DNA of 64,000 nucleotides from Paragordius varius (GCA_964247055.1 OZ176050.1:8990001-9054000); one strand, 5' to 3'. Numbered from the stretch's first letter, positions 6,030-32,215 are shown. Notes: generated by a model from the letters alone, not told the origin. Made by a program: numbers and translations.

Positions 6030-9000
6030 ATGAATATAACAAACATAGAAGATTATAAAGAAATTCTTAATCCTAAAAATAACTTATTACGTAGACCTTC
6101 TTATAAGTATGCCTCAATATAATTATTTAGAAAAATATTAAGTGATTTATCGGCATCTTCAGTACACTTCATAAATACCGTTAATGAAGACGTTACCGAT
6201 GAGGATTTTATCGAAAATAATTATTTCTCAAAGTCAAAGCGTAAAAGCTTATCTACCCCATCATTAGCCTCTTTCTTTGGCACACATGATTACGATTATT
6301 CCATTGATTTTAACAACCACTATGTCCAAGAACCATCAAATAAATTAACATTAATTAATCAACCATCGGTGATTCATGCATCTAAATCTTCTAATGATCT
6401 CACAAATAATTCCACCAATAGTCATCTTATTGACCAAAATTCTATGGCTCCAAGTCATATTGCTGATTCCTTATACAACAAAACTTTGGAGAATCCTATG
6501 CCCGCAGCTCTACAATTACAAAATCAATTGTATGAACAATATCAATCCCAACGCATCAAAAAACCCTCTCTTACAAAATCTCAAACACCACCCATTTTAT
6601 CTTGCAGAGCTAATAATAATCTATCCGGATTGCCTTTGTTAACAGACAATTTGTCTTCTTTTAAAGCGGCTTATGAAAAGTTAATTGGACAGTCTAGCAC
6701 TTCATTGTCTCCTACGCTTAGATTAAATAAGCATACTTTCCCTAACGCTAATTTACCTTTCCAATTTTCACATGATGAAGATTATGAAATCCAACGTGAC
6801 AAATATCAATCTAGCAAACGACCCTCTATCATCGCAACCGTTTCAAAAGGTTCGAATTCCGAAAATAATTTATCCTCTTATTCTAATACTATATCATTAA
6901 TTCATGGACAACCCATAACTGTTTCAAAAAATGGTGTTGCCAACAAGAAAAAAATCGCCACAATACCCCACCGAAATGCATCAAATAATGAAGGTAACTT
7001 TCCTACATCGATAATACTAATTTAAATATCTTATTTTATAACAATATATTTTAGGGTGTTTTATTGACTTGGAGATGATGATATAATAATAAGACGAAAT
7101 CGCATCTAAATTTTAGTAGCTCCCATAATTTTGAGACAAATAACTATTTAAAATTAATAATTATTAAAAATTTGATGCGAAATTTATGACGCATGTATTT
7201 TTTAGAGGTATAACTAAATATTTAGCCGCAAAGTTTGAGATGACGATTTATTGCTTTCATTGTTTAAAAATAATTATTTGAATGATACGGTATAAAATGA
7301 TTGCATATTTATCGGCATCATAAATATTTTAGAAGAAGAATAACTCTGCGACTACGGTCGTTAACTACCTTTTAAGGGGATAAAGTTTCAATAATTACTT
7401 TAACTCTAACAATCAATAATAAATTAAATAAATTTCATTTTATTAAATCGTAATTGTAATAATGATTCTTATGCACCCATATCGTTTTTATGCGCCACAA
7501 TTGAAAAATATTTGACTTTGCTAATAAAAGTGTGATTTAAATGATCTAATATACACGTCGGTCATATTAAAGTGTGATTGAACGACGGAAATCGAAATCG
7601 GAATACATTGTTCAATATATAAAATTATACCTTGTTATGCCAGAATTCAGTTTTTCTCCATACATATCATCATCCATAAATTATAACAATGTTAATAATT
7701 TTAACAGCACCTCACTTATTTCAATAGAGGATTTGAATGATTCAATGCCGAGCTATAAATCTTTATTAAGCCCAATTATTAGTTTAGATAACAACTTTTG
7801 CCGTAAGATCAATCCATATATTATAAATTTTTCACAATCGAGATAATGTACGTAAAAATAAAAATAATACAGTCGAGCATCCTAAATTTTCGAAAAAATT
7901 GTATGCATATCGTATTATTTGCTGATAATTATTACGTAAATTGATTACATAAAATCTGTTTTTTACCCTACAATATTATAATACATACATTGCTTAAACA
8001 TACACGTTTGGTTATCTTTATTGTAATGGACTGACGTCATTACACATGATAATATTTCAATGTTACCTGTTAAGTAAAAAAATAAAATAGTAATTAAAGC
8101 ATACACTTTTATTTTTAAGGTAATTCTTAATAACTTGTATGTTTTTTGCAATAATAAGTTGTTATTAATTTATAATAATATCGACCCCATTATTAAGTGG
8201 GTCAATCCAACTATGACGTATATTGATTTATTTGGTTAAAATCTTTTGAAAGCGCTTGTTACAGATGATACTCAAAAAGGGATAAAGTTAAATTATTTTT
8301 TTGCTACACCATATAAAAAAGGTAAGGCATGATGAAACCAAGTTATCATTGCTCTACCTAGAATTCTAATTATTTTCTTACGTCATATTTTTTTCCAAAA
8401 ATTTAAATTCGAAGATGAAATAATATTTGTATATGTCAGTGCTTGAAGTATTTATGTACATATATATGTAAATATGATATCTAAGGAGTTAATTTTCGCA
8501 TAAAGGCTTCGCTATGGTACGTTAATACAGAAAATATTCTCTAATAATCATTTATTGACCTCTCTTAAACTAAGATATATTACGTATAAAGATATCATAC
8601 GTTAAACGTTTTTTTTCAACAAATACACTTTTATACTTATGGCATTGATTCAATAAATTTATGCTTAGACGCAGACGATCTTCATTCTGTAAATTCCGAA
8701 AAATTCCCTACCCCATTTATCGTTCAACCCAAAGCATTTGAGTTATCATCCAATTTGAATAATAGTGCAATAATTACAAATACGAATTACTCCTCGGCTA
8801 TCAACCACAATAACAACAGCAGCAATCAAAAAGGCTTAAATTTAAGTCATATAGAAGGATCAACTGCATCAAATAATAATAATGAATCTTACTTGGGATT
8901 GGCGAACTTTACCACATCCCTACCTAATTCCAATTACAATGGTAATATGTTATGTTTATAAAGATGACTATTATTGGTCATTTCAGTATTATTTTGGCTA

Positions 9001-12000
9001 CAAAGGGTTTTACATTCTGCCTGTGTGTTAGCATTTATGATATTTTACAGCTAATTAGATTACAGGGATGTTTGCCATATTTTTATGTTAGAAATAAATA
9101 ATCACATTTCAAGCAAAAATTTACGATGTTTAGAAGATATATCATTCGAAATTAGGATAAAAATAATCAAAGCAGCCGCTAAGATATTTGTGTTGGACAC
9201 CCTTGATTTATCACATATGTGATTGCAAGTGTATTTTTTCTTTATTTTAATTTATTAAAAAAAAATAAAAAATCTCATACAGCTGATGTGTAAATTAAAC
9301 ACTCCTTTAACCAATCAAAATACTGATATGACTAATAATAGTCATCGTTACTGTATTCATAATTCTGTTCAAATTTTTGTAATTTAAAGCCCTCATTTAT
9401 TACATTTCTATAGTTACTGATTAAAATGATTTTATCTATTTTTTTATTCTATTTTTTGAATGGCTTTCCGTTTTTAATGTTTCTTCGTTTATTTTGTGCT
9501 ATTATATTTAGAAGATTTAACAACTACGCAACCTTTTCATCTTTTACATGATTATAAAGTAGAATGTCTAATTTTATTTTTATTATGAATCAAAAAGAGG
9601 AACTTGGCCATAAATTGTGATAAATTTCTCTATTTTTTAAATCTGGTATTTAGTTCATTTTAGAATTTTCACCTGTTTATGAAGATATACTTTTTTAAAG
9701 ATAAGAAGTTAAATTAATTTAAGATTTTTGCTTAAGATTGGAACTATGCCTTTTTAATATAATGAACCGGTTTTAAAGTGCATGAAAACATAGTTATATG
9801 CCTTTTTAACAAAAATCATCATGATAGTAAAAATAATTTTTTTACAGATCCTACTTTACATAACACAATGTCAGATTCCTTTTACCCTCCTCAGACTTCT
9901 AATGCTCAAAACACCGATCAAAGACTTTATCTTTTAAATCCCACCAATCCACATCATGCTTTATCGAGTAATAGTGTCCCAAATCTTTTACAACAACAGC
10001 AAACTCATTCTTTTAATCATAATATAGTTGACAACAATAATGACACAAAAAACAGCACTGGGAATCAAACTGAAAACAATGCTACAAATTTATCCATGGG
10101 CATTTTTCAATCGGTTTATCCACAAACTGGTAAAGACGGTAGTAATCTAAATAATAATTTGTTTAATAACCCGGGGCCTGATGCAATAACCCCGGGTTTT
10201 CCAGCCGTCTATCAAAATATTTTAGGGGCATCTCCGGCCTCTCTTGAATACATAAACAGTTTGAAAGATAGCGATCAGCGACTCCCACTAAAATTGAATG
10301 ACGAATTTCACCATTTTCTTCGATTACATCGCAATTATCTACAAGCTCAAAATGCGAATCAAACAAACGCTATCAAGGGACCGATTAAAACAGAACAAGG
10401 AAATGATCAATTGCCTTTAGGCCTATTTTCTTCAAACGAACTAAAGAATCATCCAGGTTTCCCTCATTTATTATCACAAAGTTATGATGGTAATAACATC
10501 ATCAATATGACGGGAAGTAATCCCTTTTATTTGTCCAACATTGTTTCAACATCATTACATTCCCAACATCCACAAAAACAAGTACAAACGGGATTAAACA
10601 ACAATAATGCTAACCTTGGCTCCTTTATTCAACACCAAAATTTAAATTTTAATGCTAATGCCAATCTTGATATTATGCACGGGGCTAAGAAAGTTTCTGT
10701 TCCTTCAAACATGTCATCGATCTCACAATTAACATCGAGCAATTTTATGCCTAATGCTTTAATGCGTTCGAGTCCTTTATCCTTTAATCTTAACAACAAT
10801 ACTGCAAATAACCTTAATCGAAGCATGAATAATATGTCGAACAATTCAAGTAATACAAGTATCGATAGTAGTACCACGACGGCTGATAAAAAACCTAACC
10901 CTGATTTTATGATGGATGACTCGATGACAAAAGGTGCGACTTTTTTTGTTTTTTTAGCGTTTTTTGTTAATTTTATAATTGTTGTGTCCATTTTATGTGT
11001 TATTTTATAGGGTTTGGCAAATATTGTGCGGCCGCGAATTTTTTATTATTCGTAAAAAAGTCTTATTTTTTTGAAATGTTTTCAAATAATGGCAACAGAT
11101 TAGGAGAAATCGGTGAAATAAATCGTTTTTATATTGTATTAGTAATTGTTTGCAGTTTTATATTAATGCACATTTTTGAATGCGGCTTGTCGGGCTTCTG
11201 TCGAACGTTCGGCCCGCAAAGCGATTTGTATTGGGCACCCCTGTTTTACAGCCACATTTATTATCATGACACACGGCCACACAAAAGAATTTGCAGAGTA
11301 ATATAATTAGAAGTAATTATCATTTTTCGGCATAAAATGCACAAAATTTGGTTGTCAAACATATCTGATCAAAAATAATTTTCGTTAAAAACTATACAAT
11401 AGTGTAAAACGTTTTTAACTTGTTTATTCAATTGCTGCATATAAAAATCAAATATTTATATTTAATTATGCCTGAAAACGAAAACGGGCCTTTTTAACAA
11501 TGCGCTATGCAGAAGTCATTCTTTACCAAAGTATTATCCCGTATGGGAAAAGATGGTTTTACTGTGAATGTAATATTTTTAAATATTGGCTTGGCTATTT
11601 TTCATTGTGTGTTTTTTATTTGATCGCCACAGATACCAACAATTTATCAAATCAAAATGCTCATCAAACTAGTACCCATCCATTCATGCAAACACAGCAG
11701 CAAACCTACTTATATCCTGGCTCATCATCATCACAAACACATATTGTGGAGGAAGCCGCACGGAAACGAGAAGTCCGATTATTAAAAAATCGGTATTTTC
11801 TATAAATTTACTATTTTATAGATGCTAATATCTTTGGTTAATATTTTATTTAGTTTGGAGGGTATTTAGCCAAAAAGTCTTTCTTACATGGGTAATAATT
11901 TGAATTCGGTTTTGTTTTTGTTTAATTTTTAGACTACACATAAGAACAGTGAAGTTTATACCAAAATTAAGTGAATTTTTACATATGCATAATATAGTGA

Positions 12001-21466: not shown

Positions 21467-24400
21467 TTAATTGTATTTTCCAATCTGATTGATATCCCCT
21501 TTGTCACCGACATATGTGTGTGTTTTGATTAGCTTTTCATATTTCACTGGAATATAAAAGGGATTAGATAGGTGTGAACATTCACTCGGTTTGCCTGAAT
21601 ACAAAAAATATAAAATAATATTTTTAATGATAAATATTTGAAAAATTATGCTTAAATAATATTAATATTGACAGCTAAATATTATATTTTAGCAGGTCGG
21701 TCAACGATTGTATATTCAAGTACTAAGCCTATATAAGATTTACACTTTGCAATCCTATTGTATCAAAAGTATTAAACAAATCACAATATTTCTATTAATT
21801 TTGATCGTTCGTCTAACCAAAATTTTATAAAATAAATGAATAATATGAAAAAAACAAACAAACCCAGAATTATATCAGCGGCTTTTTCAGCAATCATGAT
21901 AACAGGGGCATTTAAATTTCCACTCGGTATTGAAGGCATGATGGATGCATCGACAATGCGCAAATTTTTACAACCATATACATTCAAATCGGAATCAACA
22001 ACTGGCGGAGTAATATTAGCTAAAAATAATCATATATATAAAGATATTTAAGTTAAATTCACCATAATGTCCACCATTAAAGGATTGCACAATTTAATAT
22101 AACCTATTTTTAAAAATAATTAGAACCAAAATGTTTTAATTAATTCAATAATCAGCTTATAATATTGATTTCTAGTTTGTGGAAAGGTAAAATTAGACCA
22201 TTACAAAACTAGGACTATTAAAAAATAGGAATAATGCACAATAATGAGCCCATTAGTTTATAGGCAATGTTGATTATAAAAAGCTCATTATGAGTGGGGT
22301 CATTTTATGCGTGATCGCTGTAGTTTTTTAATACAATACATATATGTATGTATATATTAACTTAATTCCCCAGTTATTGATAAAACATTTTGGGGCGATA
22401 AACTTCCCATTCTACAGGTACCGCATGGATGATAAGCGCTGTCACACTTATCCATAATAGTCTTGATTAAGCTTTGTGATTTGTTTACATCGACGAAACC
22501 TACAAAAACATAAATAATACATATACAATAGTACTTTTTTACATCGTAAACTATAATTTTTGGAGTATTAATATTTTAATTATAAAGTTAATTTAAAAAA
22601 AGAGTTTTTATCAAAACATTATTGAGCGATTTTAAAAATTTAGGCAAAATATTTGTTATTTCAATGAATTTTTTTACGTATTAAATTAAAAATTTTAAAA
22701 TTGTTAATGTTGGGATTATAATTCAGCTATAAACAATTATTGTCAAACATATTAAATTAATAATAAAAATCAAAGTAACATTATTTTCAATATGCATATA
22801 TATTATATGGAGTATAGCATAAATAATGCTTCCAGAATAACGCCATAAACTACTAACTAAATATACAATTAAACTCGTCAGATTCTTATCAGTTGCTTAA
22901 GCTTCAAATTAAAATTTACCGTGATCTTTCTGAGTTAAAAAAAACTACTTGGTAAGTCCCGTAATTAAAGATATTCCAGCTAACACTATATAAAGGTAAA
23001 TGATTATTTATAAATTTCAAAAAATATTATAATAATGTTAATATAGGCCTTTTCTAAATTATTAACTAATTTTTGCCCAATCACTTTTTTTGCTCAAAAA
23101 TACGAAAAAACAAAAATAGTAAACCCTTGTCATTATAAAAAGCTTTGTGTTGCGAACCAGGACAAATTTCTTTAGCCCCATATTCTTTTGCAAGGGCGCT
23201 TTGTCTAAATATGAGCCTTGATGATTCGATTGCAGCGACGGCTTCATTTATATCCTTTTGCGTTGTGAAGTACCTGGGATCAATCTTGGGATGACAAAAT
23301 GGATTGGTTGATTGTAATGCAAGATAGCCCCTGGATGTTGGTCTCATTGAACCAGCATGAAGCTAGTTATTTTAGTTTAAATTTAATTAATAAGGTTAAT
23401 TTTTTCGGGTATATTTTGTATTAATATAAGATTGATGTTAGGGAAAGAAAATTATAAATTACAAATATGGTGAAAATATTATAAAAACCGAATCTAAATG
23501 TTATGTGCGGAAAAAATTATCTATAATAAGGGGGAACAAAAATCTGGTAAAAAGCATTTAAAACATTTTTTATGGTCCAAAATAAAAGAGATATATAACT
23601 ATGGGAAAATTTTCTCAGCAAATAATTGCGGTAATATATTGTACCGTATATCATGTAATATTAATTGGGTCATAAGGATAATTAATTAATGATTACATAG
23701 TGTATATATATAAACTATAATGAATTGATTCAAGTTTACTTGAAATGCATGAAAAGATGCTTCTTTACGTCCATGATCCTCCACCAAGCCAGCCAAAAAA
23801 TGAAATTGAATATTCGGTTGAATAGTATCCCAAACCATGTCAGTTAATAAAGTATTCAAACTGTTTTCATCTATGGCTGCGTTATGCAACATTTTATTCC
23901 TTTGAAATTGAGATATTTGGTCCGTAACGAATTGTGGCGTCTGATCTGGCCAACGAACAAATCCCCCCGACTCTAAATGTGAAGTTGCTCCCAAACCCTG
24001 TAAAGCGCAAGCATATACGGTAAAATAAACCTTTTTTGTGAAAAACATGCGACTATATCAAAAAAGTTTGTTCATCAACATAATAGCAAAACTTCAATAA
24101 AGAAAATCATAAATAATTCGTTTTGTGCGGGGAAAAAAATAAAAAACACAAACAGTAAAGATCATTTTTTTAACAAAATTTCGCCCTCAAATAGAGGTTA
24201 AACTGGAATATAAAACTTATTAAAAATTGTATAGATTAACCTTTTGGTTTAGAAACCATTGAGCACCAATCTTAATCATATTAAGTGGATAGGCCCATGT
24301 GGCTGAATATAATGTTATAGGTTTCTTACAAGTCATTTGGACATACATCTCTAAATGGTCCATCAAATTTTGACCAACACCAGGGGAATGTATCAAAGGT

Positions 24401-27400
24401 GTCACACCTACTGAATCCAAATGATCAGCATTTCCTAATTGTAACAATGTGTATTAATTTATAAATTTTTAAGTAAAAAAAGGCGAGACAATGCATGCTT
24501 TGTATAACTAACAGAAAGATTTTAAAAAGCAAATCGCAATATAATGAACCAGACTGAACTTAAAACGCAAAACTACAACATAAATTTTACACAATTAGCC
24601 GAAAATTCGATGCTTGAACATACATTTATATATATCAATTACTGAAACAATCTGGCTTAAGATAAAAAAATCAAATAAGTAATGGATACAAAGCAAAGTG
24701 AATATAGGTAAAATAGCTTGACAAAATTGTAAATATACTTGTACTTGGCTTAAGTGAATAAATTGATCTATTTTAGATAATCTTTATTAGAATTAAAGTA
24801 AAAAAATTTAACAATAAAAAAAATATATGACTTTGATGAAAAAATCCAATTTACCTATTCCCGAAAGCATTAATAATTGGGGCGAATTAATTGCTCCACC
24901 GGATAAAATAACTTCGCCACGACACTTTATATCAGTGCAGGTATGACTCCAATTTTTAGTGGTTTCTATAAAATTATAGTTATGTAATTATAAATCAGCA
25001 ATAATTATGAATGTTAGGAACACGGTATAAATACAAGTTGAAAATAAGATAAAATCCTTCTCAAGGAATTATTTAGAATACATTTAGCTAGAAATAACTC
25101 TAAAGAATAGCACAAAGATGTGTGTAACACATATTATAGTAAACTTTAAGCAAGCGATCTAAAAATACCGTTTATATTTATGAAAAGGAGATTAACAATT
25201 ACAAAACAAAAACTACAGTGTAATTTAAACAATATTATTCTAAAGGTTATAAAGGAAAAAAATAACCTGATGAAAATGTATCCATGAAGCTTGTATTATC
25301 TTTGATGGTACAAACTTGAACTCCTATAGTTTGGTAGGGACTGTCATGTTTTTTCTCACATATATCAACTGTGGTGTTTATTGATTGTTTGCCTCCCATT
25401 TTTTCAATCAAAACTTTGGTAACTAAAGTATTGCTTAACACATGTAAATTTTCACGTTCCAGGGCTGGTCTCAAATACGCTTTTGATGCACTCCAACGAA
25501 TCCCCTATTTTGCCAATAGATATATGATATGACTCTTATTGAACATTATCAAAACGAATATTATAAGAAACACGTAGAAAAACAATTTATGCTAACAAAT
25601 GAGAATCTTTCAAAGTGTTACAAAACAAATAAGTGTAGCTTAACTTTATAGCCAAAATTATTTGTAAAAAGCGTTTCCAAGATATTTTAATAGTGTGGCG
25701 AATGAAATAAATTTATAATATTTTGGATCAATTTTATGTACGTTGTGGATAGTTAAATCCATAGGTCCAACACCTTCCTGTTGAAAGCCATTCATATCAG
25801 GTGTGTAAGGAAAGCCAGCTTCTAAGCCAGCATCAATAAATGCTTGATAAAGGGGATTCGCCATCGCACAACGTGATACATGGAGTGGGCCTTTGTCTGC
25901 CAAAATATTTAAACGGAAAAAAAAATTTTAATGTCATATCAATACCAATTTATTTACAAATTAAAATATTTATTAGATATATAAAAATGAATAACATACA
26001 AAATTAAGCAGTTTATTAAAATTTATTTTGTATTAAAATCCTAGTAATAAAAATTAAGAATAAAACAGAATCCATGAATATAAAAATTATAGTGGTTAAA
26101 AGTTATTATCACTATTAAATTATAACTAAGCACTTCTAGAACGAACTTTTATACATATTATTTAAAAACCATTCAAACCACAAAATAATCTAATAAGTAA
26201 ATTTAATTTTCCCTTACATATGATATTTGATCTAAATTTATGAATATGCCCCCAAAAATAAACTTCATCTTACCACCAATGTAATCATTAGCCGGTAACA
26301 TGTCATGCGTTTCAGCCCTCCTGAAATAGGGTAAACAATGAAGATAATCCCATTGCTGGGAACAACCATATAGAGTGGCCCATCGATTGTAATCTAGCGC
26401 ATGACCTCTTATATAAACCATGGCATTAAGAGATGATGATCCACCCCAAACTCTACCTCGTGGCCAATACATGCGTCGACCTCCTTTTTCACCCAAGCTA
26501 GGTATTTTGTTTTGATGTGCAAAACTATTTATTTTTATTGCAGAATGTGTATTAATAAGAGTAAATTATATTAAATTTTCAACTTTTATTGAAAATTCTT
26601 TAAAAATCAATTTTTTATTTAATACACGCATTAAAAGCTTTTATTTTTATAATATATTATAATAATTTGAAAATGCGCAATTCTAACAAATTTGCCATCC
26701 TACTTTTCTTATTGTTATACGGGTCAACTAGCGAAAGATTGTCTTCTCGTACCCATTGGGTATAACTTCAGTATGATAAGATTAAAAAGAGGACAAATTA
26801 AAAGAGCGGGTATTATATCTACGTACATTTATGTTAGCTTATTATTAATGATTAATTTGCAACACAGTAGTCTATGGGTTAAAACAAAAAATATTCAAAT
26901 TAAACAAATCGTTCCAATCTTACAACATTAATTTTTTTAATTAATTATAGATAAAATTTGTTTTATAACACATGATACTGTATCACCAATTGGCCAACAA
27001 TAATGTGATAAGGCCAGCATAAATGTGCCAAATTTTAAGTCAGAAATGTAATTTTCTATCGGAATATTTGGATAAAGATAAAATTTGGGGGTCACATTGC
27101 ATATGGGGAAAATAAGCTCGAAAAATTGATTTTAGCTGTTTTGTCCAAATTCAAAAACACCCTAAACCAATAGATATTATCAAAATCATTTATCACATCA
27201 TTCATTTGTATGAGGATTGGCCATTAAATGAAGGTACACCCGTTTTTTCTAGTCTTTTCTTGATCTGGCTAATTCTAGATTTAAATTAAGCGATTCAGGT
27301 CTTTCGTTATTGTGTTGAGCCATAAAATGTATAAATTAAAAGCGTGTGTTTCAATAAGATTCGACATTTATAAAAAAACGCGTAAAATGCAAAAATATAT

Positions 27401-30400
27401 TTTTTTTGACACAAATACAAAATTTCAATTTTCACAATTTGTAAAAATTAGGGTATTATAATTGAAAATTTAGCTAAAGCATCAGTGTCTAAATACGCTT
27501 AGTTTTTGTATTAAAAACGTTTGGTTGGGATGGGAAAAAAATATAGATTTTCAGTTAAAGAACATTACAAAAATTTTTAATATTTAAGGCGCATATTTAC
27601 ATTCAAAGTAAAATTTTTGTGGAATTCCGCTATATGTAAATTAAAAACGTTTTATTGAATTTCTCCATCGGTAAGAAATATAAAAATTATAGTACTAAAA
27701 TCACAGTTGGATAACAAAACAAGCATATACAATATTTAATGAGCCTGCAAAAAACTTTATGTTTATGTATCAAAACTTCTATGCCTTAAATCCAAATTAT
27801 TGAAAACAATGTTATTCGCACACTATCAAACCCACCCAGCATAATTGCACGAAGAACATACTCCATCAAGTTTTTGATCTCAATGCCATAAACATTGAAA
27901 TAAAAAATGTCTGAACATAATGGGCACGTATGTAAAAAACGAGAAAATTTACTTTAAAATACTAAAAAACTACTAGTCGAAGCTGGTAGACCCTATACTA
28001 CATGGTTTTACCCAATAACAAAAGATCTCAAAATGCTAAACTGATAATAGGAATGGCCAAATCTCACATTAAGTCGAACGGTGAAAATCCCTTTACAAAA
28101 ACTAAAAAATTAAAAAATGTTTTTGGTTCTATTATAAATTTATTTTATAACCGGATATAAATTTGTGATTTTTTAACATTAATATGTTAAACAAAGTGCA
28201 TAATTAAATACAACTAGATAAAAGAATAACATGGTCTAATAGTCATAATTACAATATTTGGCAAATATATAGGAAACTATAAATAAAACCAGAAAACCTT
28301 TATCCAAAAAATGATTTTTCGAAGATATGAATAAATTTGTGGTTTCATTATTATATAATTTGATCAAGCATCAAAATAAAACATATAAAGTACAGATTCA
28401 AGTATAAGATAAAAAATATATTATGATGAATATTATGCTAACATTGTATTTTTATCCATTTTTGCCTAGTTAAAAAATAAAAATATATTAATTTTAATAT
28501 AAAAACCAATACTTTTTGTTATATGATTCCCTAAATTGAGGTACAGTGTGGTAAAACCAATTATATTTATCATCGCATAAGTTATACATAAGCGCTGCTG
28601 GCATTTTAATTTTCCAATTCCACCAAGCATCCGGTGGTCCAGCTTCAATAAGTAAAACCTGATATAAAAAAAATAAATCACGGAAAATAAAATTTTTTTT
28701 ATTAACAAAATAATAATTATATAATTATTTTAATAATAAGATAAGAAGGGTGGGGTCTATCCGGTTTTAAAAAATCCGTGACTAGGACCGCTATCAAAAA
28801 ATAAGAAGTCAAAAATATGTATATGTTATATTATGTAAAAATATAGAATTTATAGGATAATGTTAAATCATACTTTAAGCAAATAATTATATGATTTAGA
28901 AATTTTTAATTTTTTCCACATTAATTACAAACACTACTATAAACATTTGAATTGGTTAATTTCAGTTTGATCAACCACAATTTATTGAGATTTTTAACAT
29001 ATATTTGGTGTTTAACCACTGCATTTATAAGCTGGCAGACAGTTAAATCCAACCTAATCTAAAATCCTTAATTAAAATATTAAATAAAAAAATGTCTAAA
29101 AACCTTATTATTTCTATCTGCAGATAAACGATTAGCTAATACACAGCCAGCCGAACCAGCCCCAACTATAATGTAATCAAATGGTCCCTTATCTTTAGCT
29201 TGATCGATTGTTAATTGGCTGCGTGAACGATCTTGTCTTTGAGTCCAAAAATGTTTATAAAACATTTTATCAAACGGATATTTAATTCTCAATGGAGGAG
29301 CATTTGATAAATTTGATCTTGAAAATTGACGAGATATGTTTTGATGAAAAAATCGTTTATCGATTTGTCTAAACCCGGAGTTACTTGAATGAATTACGCT
29401 ACTAAAAATTGTCCTGTGTGGTGGATCATGCATAAATGTTTTAGGTCGTAGCATGCTATCCGCTGAATCCGTTTTAGAGGTAACACCGGTAATTATATGC
29501 GGATTTTCATCAATATTATTTTTATTTAAATTTTGAGTAGAACAATTTTGACTGTTTTCTGCGCATTTTTTATCGTTTTCGTCAATATCTACTTGACCTT
29601 CAACGAGTTGGAGAATTAAATCACCAAATTCGGCCACGGATGTAACAATGTGATGTGCATTGGCTTGTTCTAAATGCATTTTATTCCCAACGCCTGAAAG
29701 GACACCAATAACTAAACCTTTTGGGTAAAAAATATAATTAGTTTGAAAATAACTCAAATTTCAACATAGAAAATACCCTTAAAATATTTTTGTTTATCGA
29801 CCAAATTTTCTTTTTATTATCTAAAAGCATCACAAAATACCTAATTTAGCAGAATGACCCATTTGTAAATCGGCTTTTGTGTCGCCAATAATGGCTGTTT
29901 TTTCAGGGGGGACACCTAATTCTCGGCAAATTTTTAGCGCATTAGCCGGGTTTGGTTTAGGCCGTGAATCCAAATCGTCCCCACACACTATAGCATCTAA
30001 AAGGTCTTGTAGATTGCCCAGCTTACCTAAAATATCCATAGTGTAGTTGCGATCATCCGCAGTACAAAGGGCAAGTTTGATCCGTTTCTCCCTGAGTTTT
30101 TGCCAAAGAGGCCGTAAATCGGCCAACTGTTTAATGGTGAGATCATTGGTTTTAGTCCTAACATCATGAATGTGTCGTTTTTTACTCATTGAATTGGTTG
30201 TTACATTGTAGGGTTGGTCTGGTTTAACGACTTTATGAGTATCATGGGACAATATTATATTTTGAAATTGTATGTGATTAATATCAAATGCTTTGTCGAC
30301 AATTTCATCCGTTTGATTGCCTAACTGGCTGGTCAAAATTCCTGAATAATTGGATAAGTAAGTAGAATAATTTACATGTACAGAAGGTCTGCCTTATGAA

Positions 30401-32215
30401 ATTCTTTATGCAGACGACCTCATAATCACTGCAGAAGATATTTCAATACTCGAAAATAAATATCTTATATGGTCAAAACAATTACATAAATACGGTCTCA
30501 AAATCAATACAAACAAAACTAAAATTCTAATCACAGGAGATGAACATAAAACTATAAAGTTCCCATGCCCAGTGTGCACCACTGAGGTAAAACTAAACTC
30601 ACTTTGTTGTACAAAATGCAGAAATTGGGTCCATAAAAAATGTTCCAACATAAAAGGAAAGTTAATTAATAATAATAATTTTATGCACACCATGTGCTTC
30701 ATCAATACCACTGCCAATATCGAATCCACGTACTTTAAACTTTAATGGAGATAAACTAGAAGTTATAACATCTTTTCCATATCTGGGCGATTATATAGCA
30801 TCTGATGGTTCTTTGAGGGATGCCATTTCTCATAGAATCAGACAGGGATGGGCCAAATTCAATCAATTAAAATATATTTTAACTAATAAAAATATCAAAT
30901 CGAATCATAAGATAAAGATTTACAAAATGGGAATAAGACCAGCTATGACATACGCTACAGAAACCTGGGCCCTTACAGCAACAGACCTAAATAGACTTAC
31001 TAGAGCTGAAAATCACATGCTCAAAATCTGCAACAATAATTTTGATAATACCATAGAAGAAGATGAACCCATAGCTTTATTCATTCAGCGCAATCGATTG
31101 CGATATTACGGACATATTCAACGTATGAATTCCGATAACTGGGTCCAAAAAATACAACATTTAAATATATCCGGCCCAAACAGAAAAGGCCGCCCTAAAC
31201 TCACATGGTCCAAACAGCTGACCCAAGATCTATCACACTTTAATATTGAACACGAACAAGTCTTTGATAGGACATTGTTCAGAAAGTTGGTGCATGGAAA
31301 CCCCAGATACCCTGGGACCTAAAATGAATGGATGGATATTGGATATCAACTTATTATATATAATTTTATAGAGTTAGTAAAGAGGAGAAAAGGATATAGA
31401 TTTATTAGATTCATCCATTGAAAAAATCAACGTTATCAATATCGTTATTTAACTCTGGTACTCTAAATTTAAATTGTTTAGCTAAGGAATTTGTTAAAAT
31501 ATCAAATAATGCATTAATTTTTTTAATTGTAAAATTATATCATCCTTATAGATTAGATATTCATATAGGGTTGGTTTAAAAATGAAAAATCTAAACTAAT
31601 AACGTAATTATAAATTTGTATTTTTCCTTATAGTTTTGTTTTAAAATATAAACAATTTTGGGCATTAATATTTAGAAAAAAGCAATAAAAAACATTTGAT
31701 TCTGATCTCAAATAAATTAATTTAAAGAATTCAACCGTTGACTTTCTAAATTTCAAATCGGATATAAAAAGGGTCGTAAACTAAATTTAATATTACATAA
31801 TACATTAACTGCCTTGACTATTAAAAACTATAAGTTTAAAAATATAGAAATTTAATTATAATATATATATTGACAAATAATAAAAACTTTGGCTTACTTT
31901 TTATCTCATTTTTTGTTTGAGCAACTGTGCCCTCTGCAACAATGCCGGGTACAAATTTCTGTAAATGCTCATCGTATCCCAAAGATTTGTATAATAACTG
32001 TTTTGAATTTATTTTACCCAATATATCAATACTGCAACATATATTAAAAGTTACCTTTCAACAATATTATCCAACCACGGTTTCCAAAGAGAATGAAAAC
32101 AAATCAAGGTTCCATCTTTATCAAAAATGATTAATTTAATTTTTTTCACCCGGAGTTGGAGGGTAGAATATCTGTTGTAAAGGATCTTATTAGTGCAAAT
32201 TGCAAATAATTTCAT
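21467..32215 (-). CDS. CHDH: Fusion protein: N-terminal HAD-superfamily phosphatase plus C-terminal choline dehydrogenase (GMC oxidoreductase), probably mitochondrial
   Basis: ATG at 32215: [37 protein letters not shown] (HAD motif I). Motifs II-IV are CTAD, KP and GDTKAD in ORF 30336-29830. ORF 29757-29080 carries the HAD C-terminus in frame with [19 protein letters not shown]. Downstream exons contain [59 protein letters not shown] and [31 protein letters not shown]. The last exon ends at TAA 21469-21467. Confidence 0.92.
26941..27026 (+). repeat. Dispersed repeat fragment, copy A (in a CHDH intron)
   Basis: ttaattatagataaaatttgttttataacacatg...ccaacaataa...ccagcat is similar to 42402-42487. 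Confidence 0.7.
30383..31345 (+). mobile_element. 5'-truncated RTE-type LINE in intron 2 of the HAD-CHDH gene, antisense to the host
   Basis: [15 protein letters not shown] contains the RT YADD motif at 30407-30418. It is followed by [10 protein letters not shown], a Cys/His-rich insert (CPVC...[12 protein letters not shown]), one frameshift, then FPYLG...RIRQGWAKF...GRPKLTW and a stop at 31322. Confidence 0.9.

Follow-up and report, generated by a model that had tools for sequence, protein, structure and literature searches.

Invertebrates use betaine as a main osmolyte and methyl donor and form it from choline in mitochondria; to our knowledge, little has been established about the supply of this betaine-forming step beyond vertebrates and plants, and none of the well-studied BetA/CHDH enzymes carries an N-terminal HAD domain. 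The osmolyte mannitol is produced by MtlD, a bacterial, cytoplasmic enzyme. MtlD of Acinetobacter baumannii (mannitol-1-phosphate dehydrogenase/phosphatase, PDB 7OCS) resembles the protein described here in that a HAD-IA phosphatase is fused to a dehydrogenase, but its partner is NAD(P)-dependent rather than a GMC flavoenzyme and the reaction order is reversed, the dehydrogenase acting first and the phosphatase second. PHOSPHO1 and Pseudomonas PchP share the superfamily of our HAD half and the chemistry proposed for it, yet PHOSPHO1, judged by Pfam scans, and probably PchP belong to other HAD subfamilies. Two enzymes in one frame, headed by a presequence and separated by a presequence-like junction segment with a cleavage-type motif, are described in yeast Arg5,6 (PMC8734313) and Atp25 (PMC5063612) and in mammalian ACAD10 (PMC11342911), where internal cleavage by the processing peptidase has been demonstrated.

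In the window, a 64,000-nucleotide stretch of Paragordius varius DNA, we find a gene that likely represents a real fusion and a member of a HAD-choline dehydrogenase family in which both halves are functional. It occupies 21467..32215 on the minus strand, which carries all features given below unless noted, and comprises 15 exons with 1106 codons plus a stop, all introns being GT-AG. The spliced model reads in frame from the ATG at 32215 to the TAA at 21467 and encodes 1106 aa, with exons 1-5 at 32215-32055, 32031-31898, 30341-29841, 29717-29104 and 28658-28513, exons 6-10 at 26497-26274, 25896-25742, 25504-25267, 24965-24855 and 24434-24241, and exons 11-15 at 23997-23740, 23362-23158, 22499-22404, 22019-21864 and 21594-21467. 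GC content is 0.30-0.45 in exons versus 0.19-0.29 in introns, and tblastn of fused relatives against the window gave collinear matches across 32218-21859 and in no other place. Exons 1 and 2 are separated by a micro-intron of 23 nt (32032..32054, GT-AG); an unspliced read meets a stop, excision brings the reading back into frame, and homology with the HADs of nematodes runs on across it. Residues 1-27 (32135..32215) form a presequence-like N-terminus with seven K/R, no D/E and an NRYST sequence, so that the description of a basic, acid-free start in the earlier note holds, by composition alone. A plus-strand intronic ORF at 30813-31322 had no significant Pfam match.

The HAD-IA phosphatase half (aa 28-303, exons 1-4, 29605..32134) retains the four motifs that had been reported as intact (DKDGT, CTAD, KP and GDTKAD): motif I, FDKDGTL, at aa 31-37 (32125-32105), motif II, CTADDR, at aa 191-196 (30066-30049), motif III, RPKPNP, at aa 225-230 (29964-29947), and motif IV, GDTKAD, at aa 251-256 (29886-29869). 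All 25 residues defined as invariant across 21 family rows are kept, and exon 3 alone scores 71.2 bits with Pfam HAD_2 (cut-off 23.8) and 67.7 bits with Hydrolase (cut-off 26.4). The cap carries a lineage-specific insert of ~50 aa (30285-30136). Candidates for an in-frame hidden intron are present within this exon 3 insert and were set aside on GC, the insert being kept as coding since its value of 0.32 is above all introns of the gene and within the exon range.

The AlphaFold model of the nematode orthologue (pLDDT 93.7), with a HAD-IA helical cap after motif I and a Rossmann-like core, shows an ordinary C1-capped HAD phosphatase fold as far as prediction goes. In structure it comes closest to NANP, phosphoglycolate phosphatases and the phosphatase domain of MtlD, all at a TM of about 0.6 and, for MtlD, with a sequence identity of only 18-19%. 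The HAD half falls under the cut-off of every curated NCBIfam phosphatase: the best matches are generic (PhnX-like, phosphoglycolate phosphatase, PpaX and beta-phosphoglucomutase) and far too low. The best relative reaches 72 bits where the PhnX-like TIGR03351 requires 219, and the phosphoglycolate phosphatase models give 47-59 bits against 180-225. Curated families and solved structures offer generic HAD-IA relatives only, from which no substrate can be read. A phosphonatase identity, prompted by the weak PhnX-like matches, was dropped because the family has no invariant lysine in the cap and its scores lie far under the cut-off. Put_Phosphatase, the Pfam family of PHOSPHO1, gave no match, with E values of up to 0.1 allowed for the HAD exons and of up to 0.001 for the fused relatives; judged by sequence at these thresholds, the HAD half is unrelated to PHOSPHO1.

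The GMC half (aa 446-1106, 21470..29178) is best explained, from its sequence, as a complete orthologue of mitochondrial choline dehydrogenase. It shares with BetA (NCBIfam TIGR01810, PRK02106) and animal CHDH the FAD-binding start, GMC_oxred_N, GMC_oxred_C and the HP.GT..MG and NLNAP segments. The GxGxxG start from aa 446, with an 11-residue peptide at 29178-29146, matches PRK02106 positions 5-32 at E 8.5e-10, and further peptides of this half were placed at 22440-22405 (12 residues) and 21921-21868 (18 residues). Pfam GMC_oxred_N and GMC_oxred_C matches occur in exons 6, 7, 12 and 14, several of them above cut-off, and in every exon tested against NCBIfam choline dehydrogenase was the best match, with collinear model positions. 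Two fused relatives exceed the curated choline dehydrogenase cut-offs (P0086 and P0158; 839-853 bits against 605 and 759-763 bits against 732), and identity to the GMC halves of relatives is 47-50%. Exon 11 contains a further lineage-specific insert.

Both halves meet in exon 4 (29104..29717), which encodes the HAD C-terminus, the linker and the FAD-binding start in one frame. The earlier note had placed the HAD end (...HIVTSVAEF) and the GMC start in a single ORF, and the ORF at 29757-29080 (225 aa) is indeed stop-free; as it holds the ends of both halves and the linker, the junction is independent of the splice model, as also claimed. The splice phases of the exon fit on its 5' side (AKLG|LVIG) and its 3' side (NNK|VLLIEAG). 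Across the 142 codons (426 nt) of the linker no stop occurs, none of 200,000 shuffles was equally open, and the remaining five frames contain 6-22 stops. Part A of the linker (aa 304-353, 29455..29604), from the HAD end to Met354, is acidic and polar with a net charge of -6; this stop-free stretch of 150 nt is open in 1.1% of shuffles and 2.1% of intron windows. Part B (aa 354-445, 29179..29454) begins at the internal Met354 and is basic, with a net charge of +11. Several GT..AG stretches of 22-29 nt lie in the linker, whose splicing as micro-introns would shift the frame, and an AATAAA is found within part A.

The junction is identical in DNA contigs of three samples from two studies. Sequencing runs matching a 4301-letter stretch show even depth over introns and two haplotypes, the second of which is strongly divergent over the linker; one haplotype lacks 3 nt at codon 402, within the linker, which leaves the frame intact, and the 16 listed exonic variants between haplotypes or samples comprise 11 synonymous and 5 non-synonymous changes. 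No Paragordius varius RNA was found, all runs holding the stretch being genomic DNA, and runs presumed to be RNA contained no matching words from it. A word search with exon 4 returned no protein from Paragordius varius or close species, giving short matches at either end only, plus one ENA fragment, P0168, which represents a piece of such a junction.

The suspicion that similar architectures already sit in invertebrate annotations was correct: they are listed at NCBI as 'choline dehydrogenase, mitochondrial-like', and the Paragordius varius gene is therefore not a one-off. The order HAD, then choline dehydrogenase, occurs in acoels, gastropods, a bivalve, an octopus, Saccoglossus, an ENA contig and a EukProt entry, with named fused proteins in Convolutriloba macropyga, Symsagittifera roscoffensis, Littorina, Babylonia, Octopus and Tegillarca. 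A Pfam architecture check found HAD, GMC_N and GMC_C together in two fused relatives (P0048 and P0086), and alignment with the acoel HAD-GMC proteins runs end to end at 38.6% identity over 1105 columns. In the hemichordate Saccoglossus (886-aa gene), a single ORF of 813 aa runs through the greater part of the HAD half, then the linker and the complete GMC half; the ENA contig carries an intronless fusion of 766 aa, and Logan contigs of 2.9 and 4.6 kb hold uninterrupted ORFs of 812 aa and 1181 aa. The annotated proteins share with ours the N-terminal HAD, the signature FDKDGTL.CFHSMW.PW and a linker before the FAD motif. They differ in linker length (45-110 aa, versus about 140 aa in Paragordius varius) and lack its additional inserts in the cap and the GMC half; molluscs, unlike Paragordius varius, have two tandem HAD domains. 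In the second mollusc copy, the second Asp and the Lys of motif III have been lost, whereas the DxD, Thr, Lys, DxxxD set is invariant in Paragordius varius and all first copies.

The sequences closest to the HAD half are nematode proteins of ~300 aa (from Halicephalobus, Ditylenchus, Brugia and others), including F45E1.4, an uncharacterised gene and the free-standing orthologue in C. elegans, with 37-39% identity over the whole half (BLASTP) and 49% over the exon 3 core. They have the same invariant residues and a presequence-like N-terminus, but are encoded by free-standing genes. In Halicephalobus and Brugia the HAD gene adjoins the GMC gene, upstream and on the same strand; this adjacency is absent in C. 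elegans, Pristionchus and Ditylenchus destructor. The HAD-domain tree leaves its deep nodes unresolved and places the Paragordius varius sequence on a long branch, and so cannot say whether the fusion arose once. Taken as a family, these sequences are best explained by an old association of this HAD subfamily with choline dehydrogenase, as a fused domain or as an adjoining gene, and the Paragordius varius gene is, on sequence grounds, a further member of a fusion family known to databases and experimentally unstudied. Our literature search found no paper on a HAD-choline dehydrogenase fusion and no experimental study of such proteins; the paper on oyster betaine gives no domain description of the oyster enzyme.

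We propose that the gene gives rise to one precursor, consisting of a basic presequence-like segment, a HAD-IA phosphatase whose motifs predict an intact catalytic site, a fast-evolving linker of ~140 aa and choline dehydrogenase. Part B of the linker includes an acid-free basic stretch (aa 386-414, 29358-29272; peptide aa 387-413 at 29355-29275) with a degenerate cleavage-like RQFSR at 29331-29317, the strict R-x-[FY]-S-[TS] being absent from the Paragordius varius linker. The linker of one relative (P0086), which contains RSYST and RNFST, aligns to the 3' part of ours and the GMC start with 38% identity over 95 aa (29364-29098). Of the 11 relatives scanned, 9 carry R-x-[FY]-S-[TS], which resembles mitochondrial presequence cleavage sites in sequence, at a distance of 22-51 aa ahead of GAGSAG; the chance expectation is 0.2-3% per linker, and ~8,600 other residues hold one match. 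The ENA fusion (L009) adds RPFST, giving 10 of 12 relatives with the motif in the linker. The product may thus be a precursor that is cut into two enzymes, and the free-standing dehydrogenase of Halicephalobus begins MMRLYSTRFFST. Read as a retained internal presequence, a view not taken in the earlier note, the linker would yield two separate enzymes once the precursor is imported, not a single bifunctional polypeptide. That part B derives from the presequence of the dehydrogenase and is cut by the processing peptidase after import seems to us, for the family as a whole, evenly balanced between right and wrong; for Paragordius varius, with its degenerate motif, the same origin and cut are conceivable at slightly less than that. 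In Arg5,6, Atp25 and ACAD10 cleavage is demonstrated, whereas in the HAD-GMC fusions it is deduced from the motif in relatives.

An assembly error at the junction, or a decaying gene that yields no working protein, might be suspected from the long branch in the HAD tree, the inserts in the HAD cap and GMC exon 11 and the divergence of the second haplotype over the linker, but has been largely refuted already and appears very improbable, as independent contigs from two studies match the junction, 1106 codons in 15 exons are free of stops and frameshifts, every invariant HAD residue is kept and synonymous changes outnumber non-synonymous ones (11 versus 5). Alternatively, the locus might give a distinct RNA for each enzyme, which would leave the continuous frame a relic: the dehydrogenase message would begin at an internal transcription start or a trans-splice site ahead of Met354, and the phosphatase message would use an alternative last exon or lose a frame-shifting micro-intron. 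In favour of this, a dehydrogenase-only product could begin at Met354, which is followed by a presequence-like basic segment; nematodes, the nearest relatives that we found, have two separate genes; the gene does contain a 23-nt intron in addition to candidate GT..AG stretches in the linker; and an AATAAA is at hand in part A. We nevertheless regard such a split as improbable: the HAD frame has no stop until that of the dehydrogenase, so that a phosphatase-only message would be non-stop, part A is open at a level expected by chance in 1-2% of cases, the linker indel is in-frame, and single-ORF fusions with the same type of linker exist in other phyla. The fusion proposed in the earlier note is well supported, through comparison (the end-to-end acoel alignment and the same architecture in molluscs, a hemichordate and others) and not through RNA, while its phosphocholine route is held more tentatively.

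Both halves would act in mitochondria, where the phosphatase would make or control the alcohol substrate of the dehydrogenase; a phosphatase that releases an alcohol and a GMC enzyme that oxidises one fit consecutive steps, and the HAD link recurs across phyla with choline dehydrogenase specifically, as fusion or linkage. Dephosphorylation of phosphocholine to choline is the simplest fit, to which we give somewhat less than even odds, a different phosphate ester being at least as likely; we know of no route for phosphocholine into mitochondria. The wider alternative of a real fusion whose HAD half does not supply choline, acting on another phosphate ester (phosphoethanolamine, a sugar phosphate, a flavin or a damaged metabolite) or as a regulatory domain, with the fusion serving joint import or expression only, comes close to an even chance. 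It agrees with the generic curated matches, with the structural resemblance to NANP, phosphoglycolate phosphatases and the MtlD domain, with the loss of catalytic residues from the second mollusc copy, and with ACAD10, in which the fused HAD domain has a regulatory and not a catalytic role (PMC11342911). Against a regulatory role, the full catalytic set is invariant here and in all first copies, unlike in ACAD10; the order of alcohol release and oxidation, the partnership recurring across phyla, and the response of the F45E1.4 orthologue in the marine nematode Litoditis marina, 1.8-2.9-fold up at high salinity in RNA and protein (PMC9025465), speak indirectly for the choline link.

The repeated fusion or adjacency of one phosphatase subfamily and choline dehydrogenase, in animals ranging from acoels to an acorn worm, strongly hints that the two belong to a common pathway, and F45E1.4 provides a tractable handle on the purpose of the fusion, which can now be tested. 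If the linker is a working cleavage site, a widespread animal case would join the short list of mitochondrial polyproteins. A bolder extension, which we consider unlikely, is a polyprotein, found across bilaterians, of choline dehydrogenase and a dedicated mitochondrial phosphocholine phosphatase, cut by the processing peptidase at a former presequence with a conserved R-x-[F/Y]-S-T to give equal amounts of both enzymes as successive steps in betaine synthesis, F45E1.4 being the missing invertebrate step that turns phosphocholine made de novo into free choline. For the 64-kb window itself, the analysis provides a sound gene model and one more family member. As to the view in the earlier note that vertebrate CHDH has no HAD domain, one annotation string hints at a fish protein.

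The minus strand of the window, which is very AT-rich (GC 24-36% in 2-kb bins), carries an ORF at 29757-29080 that leads, without a stop, from the HAD C-terminus across a long linker into the start of the GMC FAD-binding region, in agreement with the claim of the earlier note that the HAD end and the GMC start lie in a single uninterrupted ORF. Around this ORF the gene model was assembled by hand, joining ORF pieces at splice sites, and comprises 15 exons with GT-AG at every intron and 1106 codons, from the ATG at 32215 to the TAA at 21467. Intron 1, placed by frame and homology between exons 1 and 2, is a GT-AG micro-intron of 23 nt (32054-32032, minus strand); kept in, the frame runs into a stop, and spliced out, the homology to nematode HAD proteins continues unbroken across both exons (tblastn). 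Exons have a GC content of 0.30-0.45 vs 0.19-0.29 for introns. With fused relatives as tblastn queries, matches are collinear along the whole gene span, and there are none elsewhere in the window. Two stretches on the minus strand are absent from all relatives, namely ~50 aa of the HAD cap (30136-30285) and ~37 aa encoded by GMC exon 11 (23824-23934), representing either lineage-specific coding inserts or unrecognised in-frame introns.

Can the open junction be a product of chance? The 426-nt linker (29604-29179, minus strand) has no in-frame stop, as opposed to 6-22 stops in its remaining five frames, and not one of 200,000 shuffles was stop-free. If the dehydrogenase had a presequence of its own, however, most of this stretch would be open regardless, and a stricter test was therefore restricted to the 150 nt that separate the HAD fold from Met354, the internal methionine of the linker. 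The proportion lacking a stop is 1.1% for shuffles of this piece and 2.1% for windows from introns of the same gene. The first stop in the HAD frame is the dehydrogenase's own.

When the HAD core was searched exhaustively, the best matches (49-53% identity) were free-standing proteins about 300 aa long; a few long proteins were found as well, among them P0048 (1013 aa) and P0086 (812 aa), which combine HAD with GMC_oxred_N and GMC_oxred_C (Pfam). A word search using the HAD-linker part of P0048 recovered this domain arrangement in two acoels, two gastropods, an octopus and a bivalve, as well as in a EukProt entry labelled Rmarinus, bearing out the earlier suspicion that such architectures already sit in invertebrate annotations; several of the fused proteins are named 'choline dehydrogenase, mitochondrial-like' by NCBI. 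The acoel proteins align end to end with the gene model (38.6% identity over 1105 columns), which in its GMC half shares 47-50% identity with the other fused relatives. Saccoglossus kowalevskii has a HAD+GMC gene of 886 aa that adjoins a free HAD gene (L008, 10001-12060 and 15528-21833), and a single 813-aa ORF there takes in all of the GMC half and the linker along with most of the HAD half, making this fusion independent of any splice model. Likewise, an ENA eukaryote contig holds an intronless 766-aa fusion (L009, 10572-12872) next to another HAD gene (8001-9092). Logan contigs of 2.9 and 4.6 kb, most simply transcript assemblies, contain uninterrupted fused ORFs of 812 and 1181 aa, and an Atlas cluster of 68 HAD+GMC proteins, labelled mostly Nematoda, has a score that serves as a lead only.

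Two tandem HAD domains occur in mollusc, annelid and flatworm-like relatives (P0154, P0156, P0166, P0157, P0301 and P0004); the second mollusc copy reads DLHGT, without the second aspartate, has lost the lysine of motif III and may be inactive. Separately, the HAD-only protein P0326 of the nematode Trichostrongylus colubriformis takes its name from 'choline dehydrogenase mitochondrial-like [Xiphophorus maculatus]', which hints that the fish protein so named also carries a HAD domain.

No paper on a HAD-choline dehydrogenase fusion was found in the literature searched; the architecture itself is already present in public annotations. The Paragordius gene is hence a further member of a family known from databases and experimentally untouched, and its value for bench tests rests on the candidate polyprotein reading and on F45E1.4, the free-standing C. 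elegans HAD orthologue, as a handle.

By profile and homology, the GMC half is a choline dehydrogenase: relatives score over both curated choline dehydrogenase cut-offs, and this family is the best for every Paragordius exon tested, with collinear positions. The HAD half keeps 25 of 25 family-invariant residues (21 family rows), including the full set of DKDGT, Thr, Lys-Pro and GD...D, so that the catalytic motifs are indeed intact, as first reported. For the Halicephalobus orthologue, the predicted structure (pLDDT 93.7) shows the usual fold of a C1-capped HAD phosphatase; the closest solved structures (TM ~0.6, identity 15-22%) comprise NANP, phosphoglycolate phosphatases, beta-phosphoglucomutases and the phosphatase domain of bifunctional MtlD. 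Nevertheless, the HAD half falls in no curated family, with the PhnX-like, PpaX and phosphoglycolate phosphatase models far under their cut-offs and no PHOSPHO1-type match in profile scans, and its substrate can therefore not be read from homology.

In nematodes the HAD protein is a separate gene, as exemplified by F45E1.4. The HAD gene precedes the GMC gene on a shared strand by 1.2 kb in Halicephalobus (L001, 10001-14992) and by 4.8 kb, with one small call between, in Brugia pahangi (L011, 10001-21099), arrangements that look like either the outcome of a fission of the fused gene or the stage before fusion, and the two genes are unlinked in Pristionchus, C. elegans and Ditylenchus destructor. 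As deep nodes of the HAD tree are unresolved and the Paragordius sequence forms a long branch, we claim an old and recurrent association of HAD with choline dehydrogenase, not a single origin.

An acidic segment of 50 residues (net charge -6) opens the linker; the 92 that follow, beginning with Met354, are basic (net charge +11) and include no acidic residue between aa 386 and 414. In nine of 11 fused relatives scanned, R-x-[F/Y]-S-[T/S] is located 22-51 residues upstream of GAGSAG, and the ENA fusion contributes a further case, RPFST; by chance the motif is expected in 0.2-3% of shuffled linkers, and elsewhere it matches once in ~8,600 residues. The free-standing Halicephalobus dehydrogenase has the N-terminus MMRLYSTRFFST. 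We take the motif to resemble the arginine-based motifs at which mitochondrial presequences are cleaved. For the composite precursors Arg5,6 (PMC8734313), Atp25 (PMC5063612) and ACAD10 (PMC11342911), processing at internal sites of this kind has been demonstrated. The motif-bearing linker would thus most simply be the old presequence of the dehydrogenase, and its retention suggests a precursor that is cut into two enzymes. The Paragordius linker has only the degenerate RQFSR (29331-29317, minus strand), which weakens the case for cleavage there.

A phosphatase reaction yields an alcohol, and alcohols are what GMC enzymes oxidise. Given choline dehydrogenase as partner, the simplest pair of steps is that proposed in the earlier note, in which the HAD half would convert phosphocholine to choline and the dehydrogenase half would pass choline on to betaine aldehyde. 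We regard phosphocholine as a candidate substrate of the HAD half, if a rather doubtful one. In its favour count the recurrent fusion and linkage of HAD with choline dehydrogenase and one data set on salinity, where the F45E1.4 orthologue of Litoditis marina is among 69 genes up in both RNA (1.8- and 2.2-fold) and protein (2.2- and 2.9-fold) at high salinity (PMC9025465, Table 2). Against it, the HAD half shows no relation to known phosphocholine phosphatases. Nor are we aware of any way for phosphocholine to enter mitochondria. ACAD10 (PMC11342911) further illustrates that a HAD domain within a fusion can be regulatory, which speaks against the phosphocholine reading too; the ACAD10 domain, however, is devoid of the second aspartate that the Paragordius HAD half retains.

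Sequencing-run searches found no run on record as RNA that contains the junction stretch. The four mapped runs have even depth across introns and two visible haplotypes and are therefore genomic DNA; DNA reads from three samples in two studies confirm the assembly of the junction. The 16 exonic differences listed comprise 11 synonymous and five non-synonymous changes, and exactly one codon, linker codon 402, is missing from one haplotype. Over 29227-29632 the second haplotype differs by 34 letters and six gaps in 406 (one of the six gaps being listed), indicating that the linker evolves fast; over HAD exon 3 the listed contigs differ in X1 by 2-4 letters per roughly 230. DNA-run depth reaches 10-100x that of neighbouring bins at 26870-27013, 27158-27301, 27734-27877 and 30326-30450, revealing high-copy repeats within introns 5 and 2. 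Intron 2 also harbors a plus-strand ORF of 169 aa (30813-31322) that has no significant Pfam match and, by eye, resembles the tail of a retrotransposon ORF.
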